Below are positions 18,110 through 55,322 of a stretch of DNA of 64,000 nucleotides, piece after piece. Within the stretch, counting starts at the first letter, position 1. Every line of letters starts with the position of its first letter. A model generated the notes under the pieces. It made no database searches. It was not told where the DNA came from and saw only the letters and a program-made list of their open reading frames with translations. Position numbers and translations under genes: made by a program. Source of the DNA: Octopus sinensis (lineage: Eukaryota); NCBI RefSeq assembly GCF_006345805.1, contig NC_043006.1:20460001-20524000 (forward strand), given 5' to 3'.

Positions 18110-18241
18110 TTCGAAATCGGGTTCGACCACTGTGGTAATTTGTACCCTAAGAGTACATCCACGCCGTCTTGTGATGACGGGTAGTTCCTCCTCGTAAATA
18201 GTAGCCACAACGGGCTCCTGTTTGACGTTTAGCTCAGCCAT
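18110..18241 (-). CDS. Putative alternative first coding exon, 44 aa (MAELNVKQEPVVATIYEEELPVITRRRGCTLRVQITTVVEPDFE)
   Basis: ATG at 18241 with G at +4, open frame, donor GAA|GTAAGA in phase 0. Ordinary amino-acid composition, CpG-retaining sequence, no AG acceptor directly upstream. Confidence 0.65.
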
Positions 18242-19450
18242 GAGTGGTTCTAATCCGAAGAATCGACATACATACATACACACACAGACACGGTAAGATT
18301 TAAATTAGATATCTAGATTTGTGGGTAGACAAAAAGACAGATACCCGTGTGTGTGTGTGTGTGTGTGTATGTGTGTGTTGATTAATAATGGCAATAGAGA
18401 TTGGCATCATATGAGGCAGAAGTCGCGTGGGCTACCATGTGTTTTTTCGGTTTGTCGACCAGGTTGATTGTCGTGAAAATAAGCGACTGCTTCTCGTCAA
18501 TGAAAGAACACAAGGATATAGTATAATAGCAGAGCCTGCTATAGTACAGTAGAGCCGGGCACACTACACTGTTGTGCAGCATAGTGTCATAGAGAAATAA
18601 ATGTACAGTAATAAGGAGTGAACTAGTGGTCATTGAGATACTGCGGTACCATATTTTGATGTTTTTCAGACAAAACGACGGTGGTTGGCCGGTAAGAATC
18701 TCAGAATGGTAACACTTCAGAAATGGTTTAAAGCGGACAGATGTTGATGTTTTCAAGTCGTTGATGTTGATGATGACTAGGGTAGTGGTTACAGTACTAA
18801 TACACCGATGAGGGTCTCCAGGTCCCCAAAACTTGGAAATGACACGTTTTGTCAACGCGAACCGATCGTAGAAATGTCGTTCATTTTCTTGTTTTATTTC
18901 CCCCCTTTCTTCTGCTTTCCCCACACTGTGTATCCGAACATCGTTAAGAAAGGAAGATCTCCGATCGAGGGTCCCCAATAATTTTGCCCCCTAATCACAT
19001 TCGGTACACTTCTCCAGCCGTATGTAAAGCGACAGAGAAGTGGAGTTGTTGGTAACGAATAGACGAGCGACAACCACGACACATCATCCCACCCCATCGA
19101 CAATAACGATCCTAGTGACGATCTCATAGAACGGCTGTTGCCAATTATAGTGATGATGATGATGGTGGTGGTGGTGTGGTAATAGGTGATATTTATAAAG
19201 CAGTAGGAATATATGATGTTAGCAATGGTGGTTGTGATAGCATAAAGGTTGGTAATGTGGTGCCGAGTGTTGACGTTGTTGTTAGCATATTTATCAGCGA
19301 GATGAGGTGTTGATGGTATGAAACGATGTTAGGGTGGTGGTGTTTCTGATGTTAGGGTGTTGTCGTTAGGGAGATGGTCGTGTTGTTGTGGTTGGCGTGC
19401 AATTGTGGTGTAATCGGCAGGATGCAGATAACAGACGTGGAAAATCAGAC
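18110..19450 (-). promoter_or_regulatory. CpG-retaining non-repetitive block, likely internal promoter and 5' UTR
   Basis: CG dinucleotides are visibly more frequent than in flanking introns, and the block lies directly upstream of the 18241 ATG. Judged by eye, not computed. Confidence 0.45.
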
Positions 19451-19585
19451 CGAGAACGTGTTTGATGATGATGATGATGATGATGATGATGAAGGCGGGA
19501 ACAAAGATCCAGTGTGAATGTGTGTGCGAGAGAAAGAGAGAGTGTGTGTGAATGAGAGGTGAGAAAGAGAGAGAGGTAGACTTAC

Positions 19586-19663
19586 TTCAGGAGAGAGGGT
19601 CACACAACACCAACAGGAGACCAAACATTTATACATGGAACAACAGCTAGTTATAGTAGACAT
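19586..19663 (-). CDS. Putative alternative first coding exon, 26 aa, Cys-rich (MSTITSCCSMYKCLVSCWCCVTLSPE)
   Basis: ATG at 19663 and a perfect donor GAA|GTAAGT in phase 0, the same boundary type as the 43974 and 18110 exons. Confidence 0.5.
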
Positions 19664-19740
19664 GAGGTAAAACAATACAAGATATAAGATGAATGCGAGG
19701 GAGTGAAAACATACCTACACACATACACACACAGCTACCT

Positions 19741-51828: not shown

Positions 51829-52055
51829 AGCTGGCAGAAACGTTAGCACACCGGGCGAAATTCGTAGCCGTATTTCGTCTGCTGCTACGTTCTGAGTTCC
51901 AATTCCGCCAAGGTCGACTTTGCCTTTCATCCTTTCGGGGTCGATTAAATAAGTACCAGTTACGCACTGGGGTCGATATAATCGACTTAATCCATTTGTC
52001 TGTCCTTGTTTGTTCCTTCTATGTTTAGCCCCTTGTGGGTAGTAAAGAAATAGGT
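51829..52055 (+). mobile_element. SINE family B nested in a family C repeat, 14-bp TSD
   Basis: ttgaccagagctgg at 51821-51834 and ttgactagagctgg at 52056-52069. Confidence 0.92.
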
Positions 52056-53172
52056 TTGACTAGAGCTGGTAAGCTAGAGAGATGCATCAGGCCCCAGTCA
52101 TCTGTTTCGGCTTGGTTTCTACAGTTGGACGCCTTTTCTAACACCAACCACTCTACAGAGTGTTCTGGGTGTCTTTTCTGTGTCACCAGCATGGTTGCCT
52201 TTTACATGTCCCTTCACTGGCCAAGACCACAATGACATGTCTTCCCAAACACAATAATCCTTACTATTATAGCCACAAGGCCTGAAATTTTAGGGGATGG
52301 GAACAATCAATTACATCAACCCCAGGGTTCAACTGGTATTTGTTCCAGCAAACCCAAAAGAATGAAAGTGAAAAGCAAAGCAGACCCCCAGTGGAGTTTT
52401 AACTGAAAACATATAAACAGATGACATACCACTAAGCTTTTTGTCTGGCGTGCTAACAATTCTGCCAGCTTGCCCTCTAATAATCATAGTAATTGTTCCA
52501 AATTTTAACACAAAGCCGGCAATTTTTGAAGGGATCAGGCCAGTTGATTAAACTGGGTCAATAAAATATGTACCAGTTGAGCACTGAGGTAGATGTAAGT
52601 GATTTACCCACTCCTTGAAACTGCTGGCCTTGTGCCAGAATTTGAAATCAATATTTAGGCAGTGACCTAGCAGAATCATTAACAGGTCAGACAAAATGCT
52701 CAGCAACTTTTCTTCCAGCTTTTAAAGTTCTGAGTTCAAATGTTGCCAATGGCAACTTAGCCTTTCATTCTTTTGAGGTTGATAAAAAAAATACCAGTAA
52801 AATACTGGGGATCAATGGTATCAACTTACCCCTTCCCCACAAAATTGCTGCCTTTTACCAAAATTTGAACTCGTCATTTCTGGTTTAGTCATACAGTAAG
52901 CAATTTTGAGGAAGGGGTTAGTCAATTAAATGAATCCCCATACTTGAGTTCCTTAGTTTATTAATCCACCCCACTTTCAAAAAACTCCCCAAAAGATGAA
53001 AGTCAACGTAAAGATCCACAAGAAATAATACTGCAAAGCATTTTTTGGATGCTCTAATAATGACAATAATTTATAGCGAAAAAGCCATAAATTTTAGGAG
53101 AGAGAGTACAGTTAATTTCATTAACTCATAACTCTTTAACTGGTCTACAAGCTAGAGGTAGCTTCCATTTAA

Positions 53173-53392
53173 CCCTTTCGTTACTGTATTTATTTTGAGA
53201 TGCTCTGTGTTTCTTTCAATTACTTTAAATATAACAAAGAATTTAGTAAAATAACTTAGTTATCATTCAGCTAGTGTTAGGAACATCAATTGTGACTAAG
53301 GTTTGGTGGAAGATTTTAATACAGAACTTATGAAAACAAGACTTTTGTACTCAGAGTCAGAGCTAGTTTCAGCCGGGTTGGTAATGAAAGGG
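53173..53392 (-). mobile_element. piggyBac-type MITE family 1, 220 bp
   Basis: TTAA|CCCTTTCGTTAC ... GTAATGAAAGGG|TTAA. Confidence 0.9.
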
Positions 53393-53541
53393 TTAACAGA
53401 ATGTCAGTGTTTTGCTTAGAATTACTAGATGAAAAGGGGAGAAAAGAAAAATGTAATTATTGAAAAATGCAGCAATGAGGAGGTAATAATCAGAATTTAA
53501 CTAAATTTCTTGGTATGAAGGAGGCAGAAATCAGAACTTAC

Positions 53542-55322
53542 CTAAATTTCCTGATGTTCATATCTCGATTGAAAAACCGTATGCAGTGACAAAGTCCATG
53601 TTTGCGTAGAACTTCTAGCAATGCTAGATGATCTTTTGATCTGCGATAATTCGAAGAACTTTCAACTTTAGCTGGAGAGCTTGAATGCCGAACAAACGGT
53701 CGGAGATTGAAGCTGGCATTGTAACTACCAGTGCTGCTTCCACGAAGAATTGAGGTACTACAGTTCTCAAAACCAGCTCTCATTTCATGACCTCGAACTG
53801 ATAATGTTGAGTCCGAAAGCTGCAATTCTCGGACCTTCTCACATGGTCGTTTCTGTAGAGAGGTCTGACTGTTAAGTGATGTCTCCGAAGAACACATAGG
53901 TTGAAAATGCAATGAAGCACTTCTGATTCGCTCCTGGTTATCAAGTGACAAGAGGCTGGCATTAGAACCAAATAAACCTATTCCTGGGATTTTCAATGAA
54001 GAAGAAGGCAATTGAGAAGATGTCAAGTTTGAAGTTGTGGTTATTAAGTCTTCTTCATACTCATCGAAAGCTGGTTCTTGGATAAGGCGTCGCTTGAGGC
54101 GGCTGTTTTTTGTGGGTAACTCAGGACTACAAAAACTCAAATCAGGTGAGCCAGTCCCATCTGAATCAATATTGCTGTATGATGAAAGACCGGGAGAAAG
54201 CTGTGACTGGTCTTTATCCCTTAAACTGCTGCTGGTTTCAGGGGATTTACCCAAGAGACTTGTGGTTTCAGAAGTAACACTCAATAGTGAAGGGGTTGTA
54301 GATGAAGAGGAAATGTTGTCACTCTTATCCTCCTGGTCTTCTTCTTGAGTCACGATGTCTGTACAACTAGTATTAATAGTCGTTACTTCTGTAACAGTAG
54401 ATGGTGTGCTTCCAATTGATACAGCGACATTGGCAGTTGTCTTCACACTTGCTGACGTAGTAACAGCAGTTGTCGTTTTGCTCGATGTAGCAGCAACAGT
54501 TGTCTTCATGCTGGACGTTACCACCGTAGTGGTCTTCATGCTAGGTGTAGCAGCAACAGATGTAACATTGGCAGTTGTCTTAATACTTGGTGCAACGGTA
54601 ACATTTGTCTTCACACTCGTCACCTCAGTGACTGTCGGTTTTGGTGCTGGGGTCGGGACTTCAGTCTTTGGCAAGTGGAAATGATAAGAAACGACACCCA
54701 TTTTCCGCTCCCTAGAACAATCCTTCTTGCCATCTGAAGAACCGCCACGACCAGCCCGTTTGGCAGTTGCACTCGGTGAGGATTTTGATGAAGCACCACT
54801 TTTCTTTGAGGTTGGTGATGAACCATGTTTCTGAGTTGTGCCACTGCTTCCTTGACTCGCAGACTGGCCGGTGCCACTTTTTGATGAACTACTGCGACCA
54901 CTCGTTTCTAATTTTCCACTAACACCACTACTACTGCCACTGCAATTACTTGCAGCCAAACTAGATTTTTCTGATTCTTGCGAACCAAAGGTCGACGAAG
55001 CAGATGAATTAATGTCTGGCGGCACCGGTTCCTTAATGTGGGCCTTTTTCTCTGCTTTCCCGCCATCTTCAGGCTTCTTCTTTGTTACTTTATTCTTGGT
55101 AGCTTCGACTTTTGAATTTTGGCCACTATCACTTGATGTTTTGCTGGCTTTAGTGGTGACGCTACCACTTTTTTGGCTTCCTTTACGCTTCGGAGTAAAG
55201 ACATCTTGTTCAATAACTTGATGTTCTACGTGATCTCTCTGACGTGTAAGTTTCCGACGAGATCCTTCCTGGTTATATTTTGATGAGGTAGACTTTCGAG
55301 AAGATGCCATTCTTCTTCGCTC
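53542..55322 (-). CDS. Large coding exon of a SAM-domain protein: Ser/Thr/Lys-rich low-complexity region followed by the N-terminal half of a SAM-like domain
   Basis: Lies in the 616-aa ORF 53538..55388. Acceptor is a polypyrimidine tract then ttttcag|GAG (AG at 55324-55323, phase 0); donor is TTTAG|GTAAGT (GT at 53541-53540, phase 2). Candidate ATG at 55310 (MASSRK...). Ends LLEVLRKHGLCHCIRFFNRDMNIRKF(R). Confidence 0.9.

Follow-up and report, generated by a model that had tools for sequence, protein, structure and literature searches.

We analysed a stretch of 64,000 nucleotides (nt) from Octopus sinensis (contig NC_043006.1, positions 20,460,001 to 20,524,000, hereafter the window), in which a preliminary description, made from the letters alone, had proposed a gene with several promoters and interchangeable N-termini, one of them a long disordered arm with a sterile alpha motif (SAM) domain. 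The window quite probably covers the 5' part of the octopus gene that is orthologous to kinases of the MAST (microtubule-associated serine/threonine) family, encoded on the minus strand and read from right to left, with two mutually exclusive coding 5' modules that lead into one common body. As judged from the sequences compared here, this is most likely a MAST-kinase gene with two N-terminal versions, either a floppy arm with a SAM domain or a short motif of 44 residues. Module A would consist of the exons 53542..55322 and 43974..44088, which jointly specify 628 amino acids (aa), a conserved low-complexity arm with the SAM domain at its end. Module B would be the exon with its donor at 18110, providing 44 aa with their own ATG and a motif (IYEEELPVI-RRRGCTLRVQIT) that is conserved across protostomes. 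The first shared exon (SDYG.PSS...LRRLxRTLSE), followed by DUF1908, the AGC kinase domain and PDZ, would lie to the left of the window edge. The preliminary description had not recognised the gene; a DUF1908-bearing ortholog in Argonauta and motif-bearing MAST proteins of other animals now give it a name, and for each module the homologs in other species are shown to be MAST proteins.

The first coding exon of the SAM-arm isoform (53542..55322, minus strand) opens with a 5' leader of 12 nt, followed by an ATG at 55310 and about 590 codons that specify an arm, Ser/Thr-rich and probably disordered, together with the SAM domain's first half. Its acceptor AG at 55324-55323 is preceded by a pyrimidine tract of 30 nt, and it exits in phase 2 through an AG|GTAAGT donor (GT at 53541-53540). 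A phase-2 intron of 9.45 kb (44089..53541, minus strand), in which dispersed repeats and low-complexity DNA occur, interrupts the SAM coding sequence at this point. The second coding exon (43974..44088, minus strand; acceptor AG at 44090-44089, TTTTAG) completes the SAM domain with its C-terminal half, adds an acidic tail (...MDEDTDTE), and exits through a phase-0 GAA|GTAAGT donor. When the two exons are joined, the frame is restored and remains open over 628 codons, in keeping with the arm-plus-SAM peptide of roughly 630 aa that had been proposed initially. Compared with a collinear contig of another octopod (L001), the large exon shows 93% identity at the aa level and 92.5% at the nt level, as opposed to 76-84% in its flanks, with a ratio of non-synonymous to synonymous substitution rates (dN/dS) of 0.15 at a dS of 0.23, and both its acceptor and its donor are kept. 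Since the acceptor is conserved, the promoter of this isoform should be located further upstream, possibly beyond the window. The arm is of low complexity, yet it is under selection, most strongly over aa 401-600. A block at aa ~380-560 (window ~54170..53630, minus strand) shows only 3 aa differences in 140 codons, compared with 24 in 198 codons of the block preceding it; it is highly similar in Argonauta and contains the basophilic-site-like sequence RIRSASL. From this pattern of conservation, the arm probably carries linear motifs.

The end of the arm was assigned by sequence and by fold. Pfam SAM_1 (PF00536) matched aa 565-620 of the joined peptide, covering model positions 9-64 of 64 and spanning the splice junction, with a score of 24.1 bits, which exceeds the cut-off of 23 only narrowly; for the Argonauta ortholog the score was 17.2. 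Sequence matches in the PDB were to the SAM domains of ANKS3, ANKS6, SASH3 and BICC1. When the final 95 residues were modelled with AlphaFold2, a five-helix bundle resulted (helices 26-37, 41-46, 53-57, 61-66 and 73-93) with predicted local distance difference test (pLDDT) values of 85-92, and the best 50 of 190 matches in a Foldseek search of the PDB were all SAM-domain entries (ANKS3, BICC1, SARM1, TNKS). Among the Foldseek matches listed, the closest reached a target-normalised template modelling (TM) score of up to 0.86 at a root-mean-square deviation of 1.2-1.5 Å, while the corresponding E-values, at 0.05 or more, were weak owing to the small size of the domain. As modelled, module A is shown to end in a genuine SAM fold. 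Head-to-tail polymers or hetero-complexes are known for the SAM domains of ANKS3, ANKS6, BICC1, tankyrase and SARM1; by analogy, a role in clustering or docking the kinase is plausible for the SAM isoform, and self-association or SAM-SAM docking would then concentrate the enzyme at a scaffold.

The link from this module to MAST is provided by gene models of other species. The sole annotated homolog of the arm is a partial protein of 985 aa from Argonauta hians, which aligns with 67-68% identity at 100% coverage. In this protein, the acidic tail ...LDEDTDTE runs directly into SDYGTPSSSHSPLPSP...LQRTLSEE...NLLRMHNSVLGQSAPSLS, followed by DUF1908 (PF08926, 288 bits); the SAM exon is hence joined to an SDYGTPSSS segment, and the 44-aa exon is skipped. 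A tblastn search of the window with aa 600-652 of the Argonauta protein returned exon 43974..44088 (E 1.4e-15). The Argonauta gene spans 171 kb, and the next two called genes encode DUF1908 plus Pkinase and Pkinase, respectively, so that this is a single MAST locus which the annotator had split. The common catalytic core that the preliminary description had anticipated to the left of the window can, on the strength of this DUF1908 ortholog and of the Pkinase in its next called genes, be identified as that of a MAST kinase. Similarly, two spider MAST models (Stegodyphus and Caerostris) possess, ahead of their pre-DUF region, a segment homologous to the octopus SAM domain. Pairwise comparison of the spider and octopus segments gives an E-value of 3e-5, and a hidden Markov model built from the cephalopod and Stegodyphus sequences then detects Caerostris. 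With a structure model of the spider segment as the query, SAM domains make up most of the best 50 fold matches listed from the PDB, and we term the segment SAM-like. Judged by this homologous SAM-like N-terminus, the occurrence of a SAM domain on MAST is not mollusc-specific, and the earlier suggestion of a lineage-specific fusion has to be given up to that extent.

Module B is represented by an alternative first coding exon with its coding part at 18110..18241 (minus strand), an ATG-led sequence of 44 aa, MAELNVKQEPVVATIYEEELPVITRRRGCTLRVQITTVVEPDFE, that ends in phase 0 at a GAA|GTAAGA donor. The peptide is identical in an entry from O. bimaculoides and in the octopod already compared above (here contig L006). 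Over its 132 nt, the exon differs from the latter by 7 synonymous and 0 non-synonymous substitutions, with no gaps and an identical donor; nt identity is 94.7%, compared with 74-84% and many indels in the flanks. Two sequences from further afield conserve 73-79% of the peptide and keep a phase-0 consensus donor, shifted a few to ~20 codons downstream, and the ATG and the MAE start are retained in four cephalopod sequences. By this substitution pattern, the 44-aa exon is a genuine coding exon, and the comparisons with other octopods show both modules to be real exons under purifying selection. The O. bimaculoides protein A0A0L8FXR4, an 'uncharacterized protein' of 83 aa, is orthologous to 17990..18241 (minus strand) of the window; it reads past the donor into the intron and differs from the window in the intron-derived part. 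Going by this alignment, A0A0L8FXR4 is a mis-modelled read-through fragment of the MAST first exon.

Pfam searches with the 44-aa peptide, and with a 26-aa peptide considered below, gave no meaningful match. A profile search of the kind that the preliminary description had advised was more informative: an exhaustive search of 1.84 billion representative proteins with a three-sequence profile of this exon matched, at E<1e-3, 76 representatives from annelids, molluscs, chelicerates and crustaceans, among them a full-length MAST kinase of a tick. Their consensus is [ST][IV]xEE[ED][VL]PVI[VM]RRRGC[TM]LRV[RQ]I[TV]S. Many of the 76 are unnamed short read-through open reading frames on genomic contigs. 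The tick protein (Ixodes hexagonus CAN8004347.1, 1,640 aa) has the motif at its N-terminus (residues 7-34), with DUF1908 (419 bits), Pkinase and PDZ behind it. In Capitella teleta ELU17613.1 (879 aa) the motif is present as well, and DUF1908-type sequence was recognised by eye. Further bearers of the motif are Mytilus coruscus 'MAST', Plakobranchus 'MAST2' and proteins of Paralvinella, Littorina, Nucella, Rhipicephalus, Limulus and a crab. One subgroup of these proteins continues as ...ITSITDEDLEEFERECVG. A search with the profile and with a regular expression did not find the motif in 120 mostly vertebrate MAST fragments, a weak negative given that these were fragments only. Insect MAST N-termini that seemed to resemble the 44-aa exon ('..SNSARILVFEEP') were discarded, as neither blastp nor tblastn supported the resemblance. 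Within the motif, the invariant RRRGC(T/M)L agrees with a site for basophilic kinases of the form RxRxxT and is followed by a beta-strand-like alternation, LRVRITS. In what is the weakest step of our interpretation, these features hint at an element for docking, or a pseudosubstrate, under the control of phosphorylation; in isoform B, the basic RxRxxT-like motif might accordingly act in regulation or docking.

What follows the motif in other species ties the two modules to each other. In Capitella, the motif exon continues as ...N|SDYGVPSS...LRLLRTLSED, and in Mytilus coruscus as ...E|SDGGAPHSPGPPLSP...RRLQRTLSED, so that in both animals the pre-DUF segment, SDYG/SDGG...RTLSE...SAPSLS, comes directly after the motif; in Paralvinella and in Plakobranchus 'MAST2' it is located upstream of a related RTLSE...SAP(S/N)LS pre-DUF sequence. 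Both modules are hence joined to the same SDYG/SDGG...LRRLxRTLSE segment in gene models of other species. As the motif in Capitella and Mytilus and the SAM exon in Argonauta precede the same segment, a cross-species case can be made for one shared acceptor exon, which either module would fit because both exit in phase 0. The SAM-bearing models of Argonauta and the spiders are devoid of the 44-aa motif, and the motif-bearing tick, annelid and bivalve models are devoid of a SAM domain. Moreover, the sequence in front of the 44-aa exon would not permit both modules in one transcript. Upstream of its ATG, the frame closes after 18-21 codons in both octopods, and the lone AG in this open stretch, where a pyrimidine tract is poor or absent, could be used in frame only with a donor of phase 1. 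If it were joined to the phase-0 SAM donor nevertheless, a stop would be reached within 7 codons. Since the upstream AG needs phase 1 while the SAM exon exits in phase 0, the modules would be mutually exclusive, and judging from these frames an in-frame order of A then B cannot occur. Each module would be expressed from a promoter of its own in this species.

No common downstream exon is present in the window, as the preliminary description had noted: tblastn with cephalopod, annelid, bivalve, gastropod, crab, tick and Limulus proteins found no MAST body there, nor any sequence encoding DUF1908. With the gastropod, annelid, bivalve, crab, tick and Limulus proteins, only 18.1-18.25 kb was matched, and with the Argonauta protein only the two SAM-arm exons. 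As the latter matches nothing else in the window, the intron after 43974 must exceed 44 kb. This long phase-0 intron, of which the window contains the first part (1..43973, minus strand), leaves the window at its left edge and holds the 44-aa exon.

The preliminary description had set out from three exons that end in the same boundary. Three phase-0 GAA|GTAAG boundaries are indeed found where it placed them, at 43974, 19586 and 18110, all on the minus strand, and these are the only three occurrences of GAAGTAAG in the window with both strands counted. The shared boundary itself, however, had to be rejected as a sign of relatedness: dinucleotide shuffles of the window contain a mean of 1.89 copies, and at least 3 copies were reached in 30 of 100 shuffles. 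The second common trait, an ATG-led open frame with a phase-0 exit, is shared by 18110..18241 (44 aa) and by a Cys-rich frame at 19586..19663 (minus strand; 26 aa, MSTITSCCSMYKCLVSCWCCVTLSPE), as had been reported. On the plus strand, which was taken as a control as no coding exon was found there, ATG-led open frames of at least 26 codons with a phase-0 exit occur at 3 of 37 GTAAG sites. The pattern is thus at chance level, and each proposed exon has to be judged on other evidence. By that standard, two of the three interchangeable N-termini that had been put forward, the SAM arm and the 44-aa peptide, stand as conserved modules with the same exit phase, while the Cys-rich one does not.

That all three are nevertheless alternative first exons of a common core, the 26-aa peptide possibly serving as a palmitoylated membrane anchor, strikes us as highly improbable. 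The frame does combine an ATG and an open frame with a phase-0 boundary and a consensus GTAAGT donor (exit GAA|GTAAGT), and it is situated 1.3 kb upstream of the genuine alternative exon, where a promoter region would be plausible. Against this, it has no homolog and no Pfam match, and no similar N-terminus was seen in any of the MAST models inspected or among the 76 motif-bearing relatives. Moreover, its cysteines correspond to TGT/TGC codons in TG-rich DNA: on one side, no more than 50 nt away, stands a (TGTA)n/(TAGA)n array (19709-20056), and behind the frame come a CT/CA-rich stretch and (TGA)10 (19463-19492), so that a TGT-rich composition beside microsatellites accounts for them. An origin from repeats dispersed in the window can be dismissed for this frame as well as for the 44-aa exon. 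On the basis of its composition and lack of relatives, we judge the 26-aa frame to be a chance open frame outside the coding repertoire of the gene, at most a non-coding leader or one bearing an upstream open reading frame, as would result if its donor were joined to the weak AG that stands 10 nt ahead of the 44-aa ATG; that its donor serves a non-coding leader might be the case, but this is speculation. Slightly less credible still is the idea that the 44-aa exon is not a first exon but an internal cassette, spliced in after upstream coding exons such as the SAM arm. It derives from gastropod and crab models (Plakobranchus, Littorina, Nucella, Petrolisthes), in which the motif lies behind 90-480 aa; the position of this exon therefore depends on the lineage, and its status as a first exon is not universal. 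In the octopods, by contrast, the closed frame upstream of the ATG, the out-of-phase AG and the early stop described above leave little room for such an arrangement. Furthermore, the MAE start is kept in cephalopods, the Argonauta model skips the exon, and tblastn with the upstream regions of the gastropod proteins found no match in the window.

A more serious alternative, though still an unlikely one, is that the window contains parts of two genes: the SAM arm would belong to a separate SAM gene, located head-to-tail upstream of a MAST gene that starts at the 44-aa exon, and the joins in Argonauta and the spiders would be fusions made during annotation. It is here that the points against the favoured two-module gene have to be considered. 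The splice junctions in this species are deduced from gene models of other species, and the junction from SAM to MAST is known from automated models, made by pipelines that are able to fuse neighbouring genes. The Argonauta model is partial, and the MAST locus is split there into three called genes. In the tick, the motif-first form is a complete MAST by itself, and no SAM domain is mentioned in the MAST papers examined. The spider segment falls below significance for Pfam SAM, and its fold match to SAM domains is weak (TM 0.45-0.59). As to the motif, its internal position in the gastropods and the crab also speaks against two alternative first exons. Finally, a word-indexed protein search with the 44 aa and the Argonauta body as a combined query returned the MAST family at large, the two spider models included, in the form of fragments below ~700 aa only, and missed the Argonauta protein itself despite 344 aa of it in the query; as long MAST proteins are missed by this index, the absence of a cephalopod isoform from its results carries no conclusion. 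What decides us against two genes is the structure of the locus. The SAM exon has no stop and exits in phase 0, as the SDYG exon requires, and the interval from 43974 to 18241 yielded neither a terminal exon nor any coding sequence backed by a homolog. In addition, the same fusion error would have to have been made in two phyla, in a cephalopod and in spiders, with conserved synteny and orientation. We therefore retain a single MAST gene with two alternative 5' modules as the preferred reading.

The remainder of the window is AT-rich animal DNA, full of repeats. An intact tRNA-Asp(GTC) gene is located on the opposite strand inside the long MAST intron (8346..8417, plus strand; Rfam tRNA 58.2 bits, with ARAGORN in agreement). 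Between 13232 and 16102 lies a degenerate simple repeat of AT/TATG/TACA type, ~2.9 kb in length, with a GC content down to 0.12 and a GC skew of -1.0; it is part of a low-GC zone that extends over ~12.1-16.3 kb, and it yields long spurious minus-strand frames rich in Y, I, C and M. Dispersed repeats were found on both strands, at 44428-44815, 46997-47560, 52035-52235 and ~13044-13200, and also at 3771, 4088, 7525, 22134 and 35666. They give rise to the recurring pseudo-peptides 'LDALPNANHS...GAFYVPPAQ' and 'TCPRCHAVGLNPEP', and probably represent short interspersed nuclear elements or other transposon families that fill the introns.

Neurodevelopmental disease and cancer have both been linked to MAST kinases, while their targeting and regulation are poorly understood. 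In the papers examined, all of the protein that precedes DUF1908 is taken to be disordered. Under the interpretation proposed here, a folded SAM domain and a basic motif of 30 residues, found from annelids to ticks, would offer testable handles on the localisation and regulation of these kinases. For genome annotation, the results reassign A0A0L8FXR4 to a MAST first exon and indicate that introns at a MAST locus can exceed 44 kb. Apart from a modestly novel domain variant, the locus looks mostly like an ordinary large multi-promoter signalling gene. The SAM-MAST architecture is already contained in deposited gene models, and is unremarked rather than unseen. A more far-reaching proposal, which we regard as possible but doubtful, is that this dual 5' architecture is old and undescribed in protostome MASTs, comprising a version with a polymerising SAM domain and a version with [ST][IV]xEE[ED]xPVIxRRRGCxLRVxI, and that it was lost from, or never present in, the MASTs of vertebrates, flies and worms. 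In this scenario, the SAM isoform would build higher-order scaffolds, and the RxRxxT-type motif would be a phospho-regulatory or pseudosubstrate switch.

The closest known relatives of the gene are the MAST kinases themselves, represented by human MAST1-4, Drosophila Drop out and C. elegans KIN-4. DUF1908, their common domain, is found in the Argonauta ortholog and in the motif proteins of tick, annelid and bivalve; the tick protein additionally has the AGC kinase domain and PDZ of MAST, and the pre-DUF segment NLLRM..LGQSAPSLS is likewise shared. In the MAST literature examined, these proteins are described as DUF1908-kinase-PDZ arrangements with disordered termini only, with no mention of a SAM domain (PMC12024977, PMC10419289, PMC12732324), and in the literature searched we found no paper that pairs MAST kinases with a sterile alpha motif. 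Unlike the MASTs described so far, one octopus isoform would add a folded SAM domain behind an arm of ~560 aa, and the other would start with a conserved motif of 30 residues that is absent from the 120 vertebrate-dominated fragments mentioned above. Mammalian MASTs tolerate N-terminal truncation in vitro (PMC12732324), which fits with N-termini that serve in targeting or regulation, not in catalysis.

The SAM domains of ANKS3, ANKS6, BICC1, tankyrase and SARM1 provide the best sequence and fold matches of the octopus SAM domain, but identity to them is only ~30%, and none of them is found on an AGC kinase. A SAM domain and a protein kinase domain are likewise combined in one polypeptide in Eph receptors, ZAK/MAP3K20 and yeast Ste11, where the SAM domain serves clustering or partner docking; these kinases, however, belong to other groups than MAST, and the position and context of their SAM domains are different. 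With respect to gene architecture, PDE4/dunce and PKG/foraging, which the preliminary description had invoked, are multi-promoter signalling genes with alternative first coding exons. The octopus locus resembles them in that its 5' exons, each with its own ATG and all sharing one exit phase, are distributed across tens of kb and would join one common exon; it differs from them in that two such modules are supported here, each with a presumed promoter of its own.

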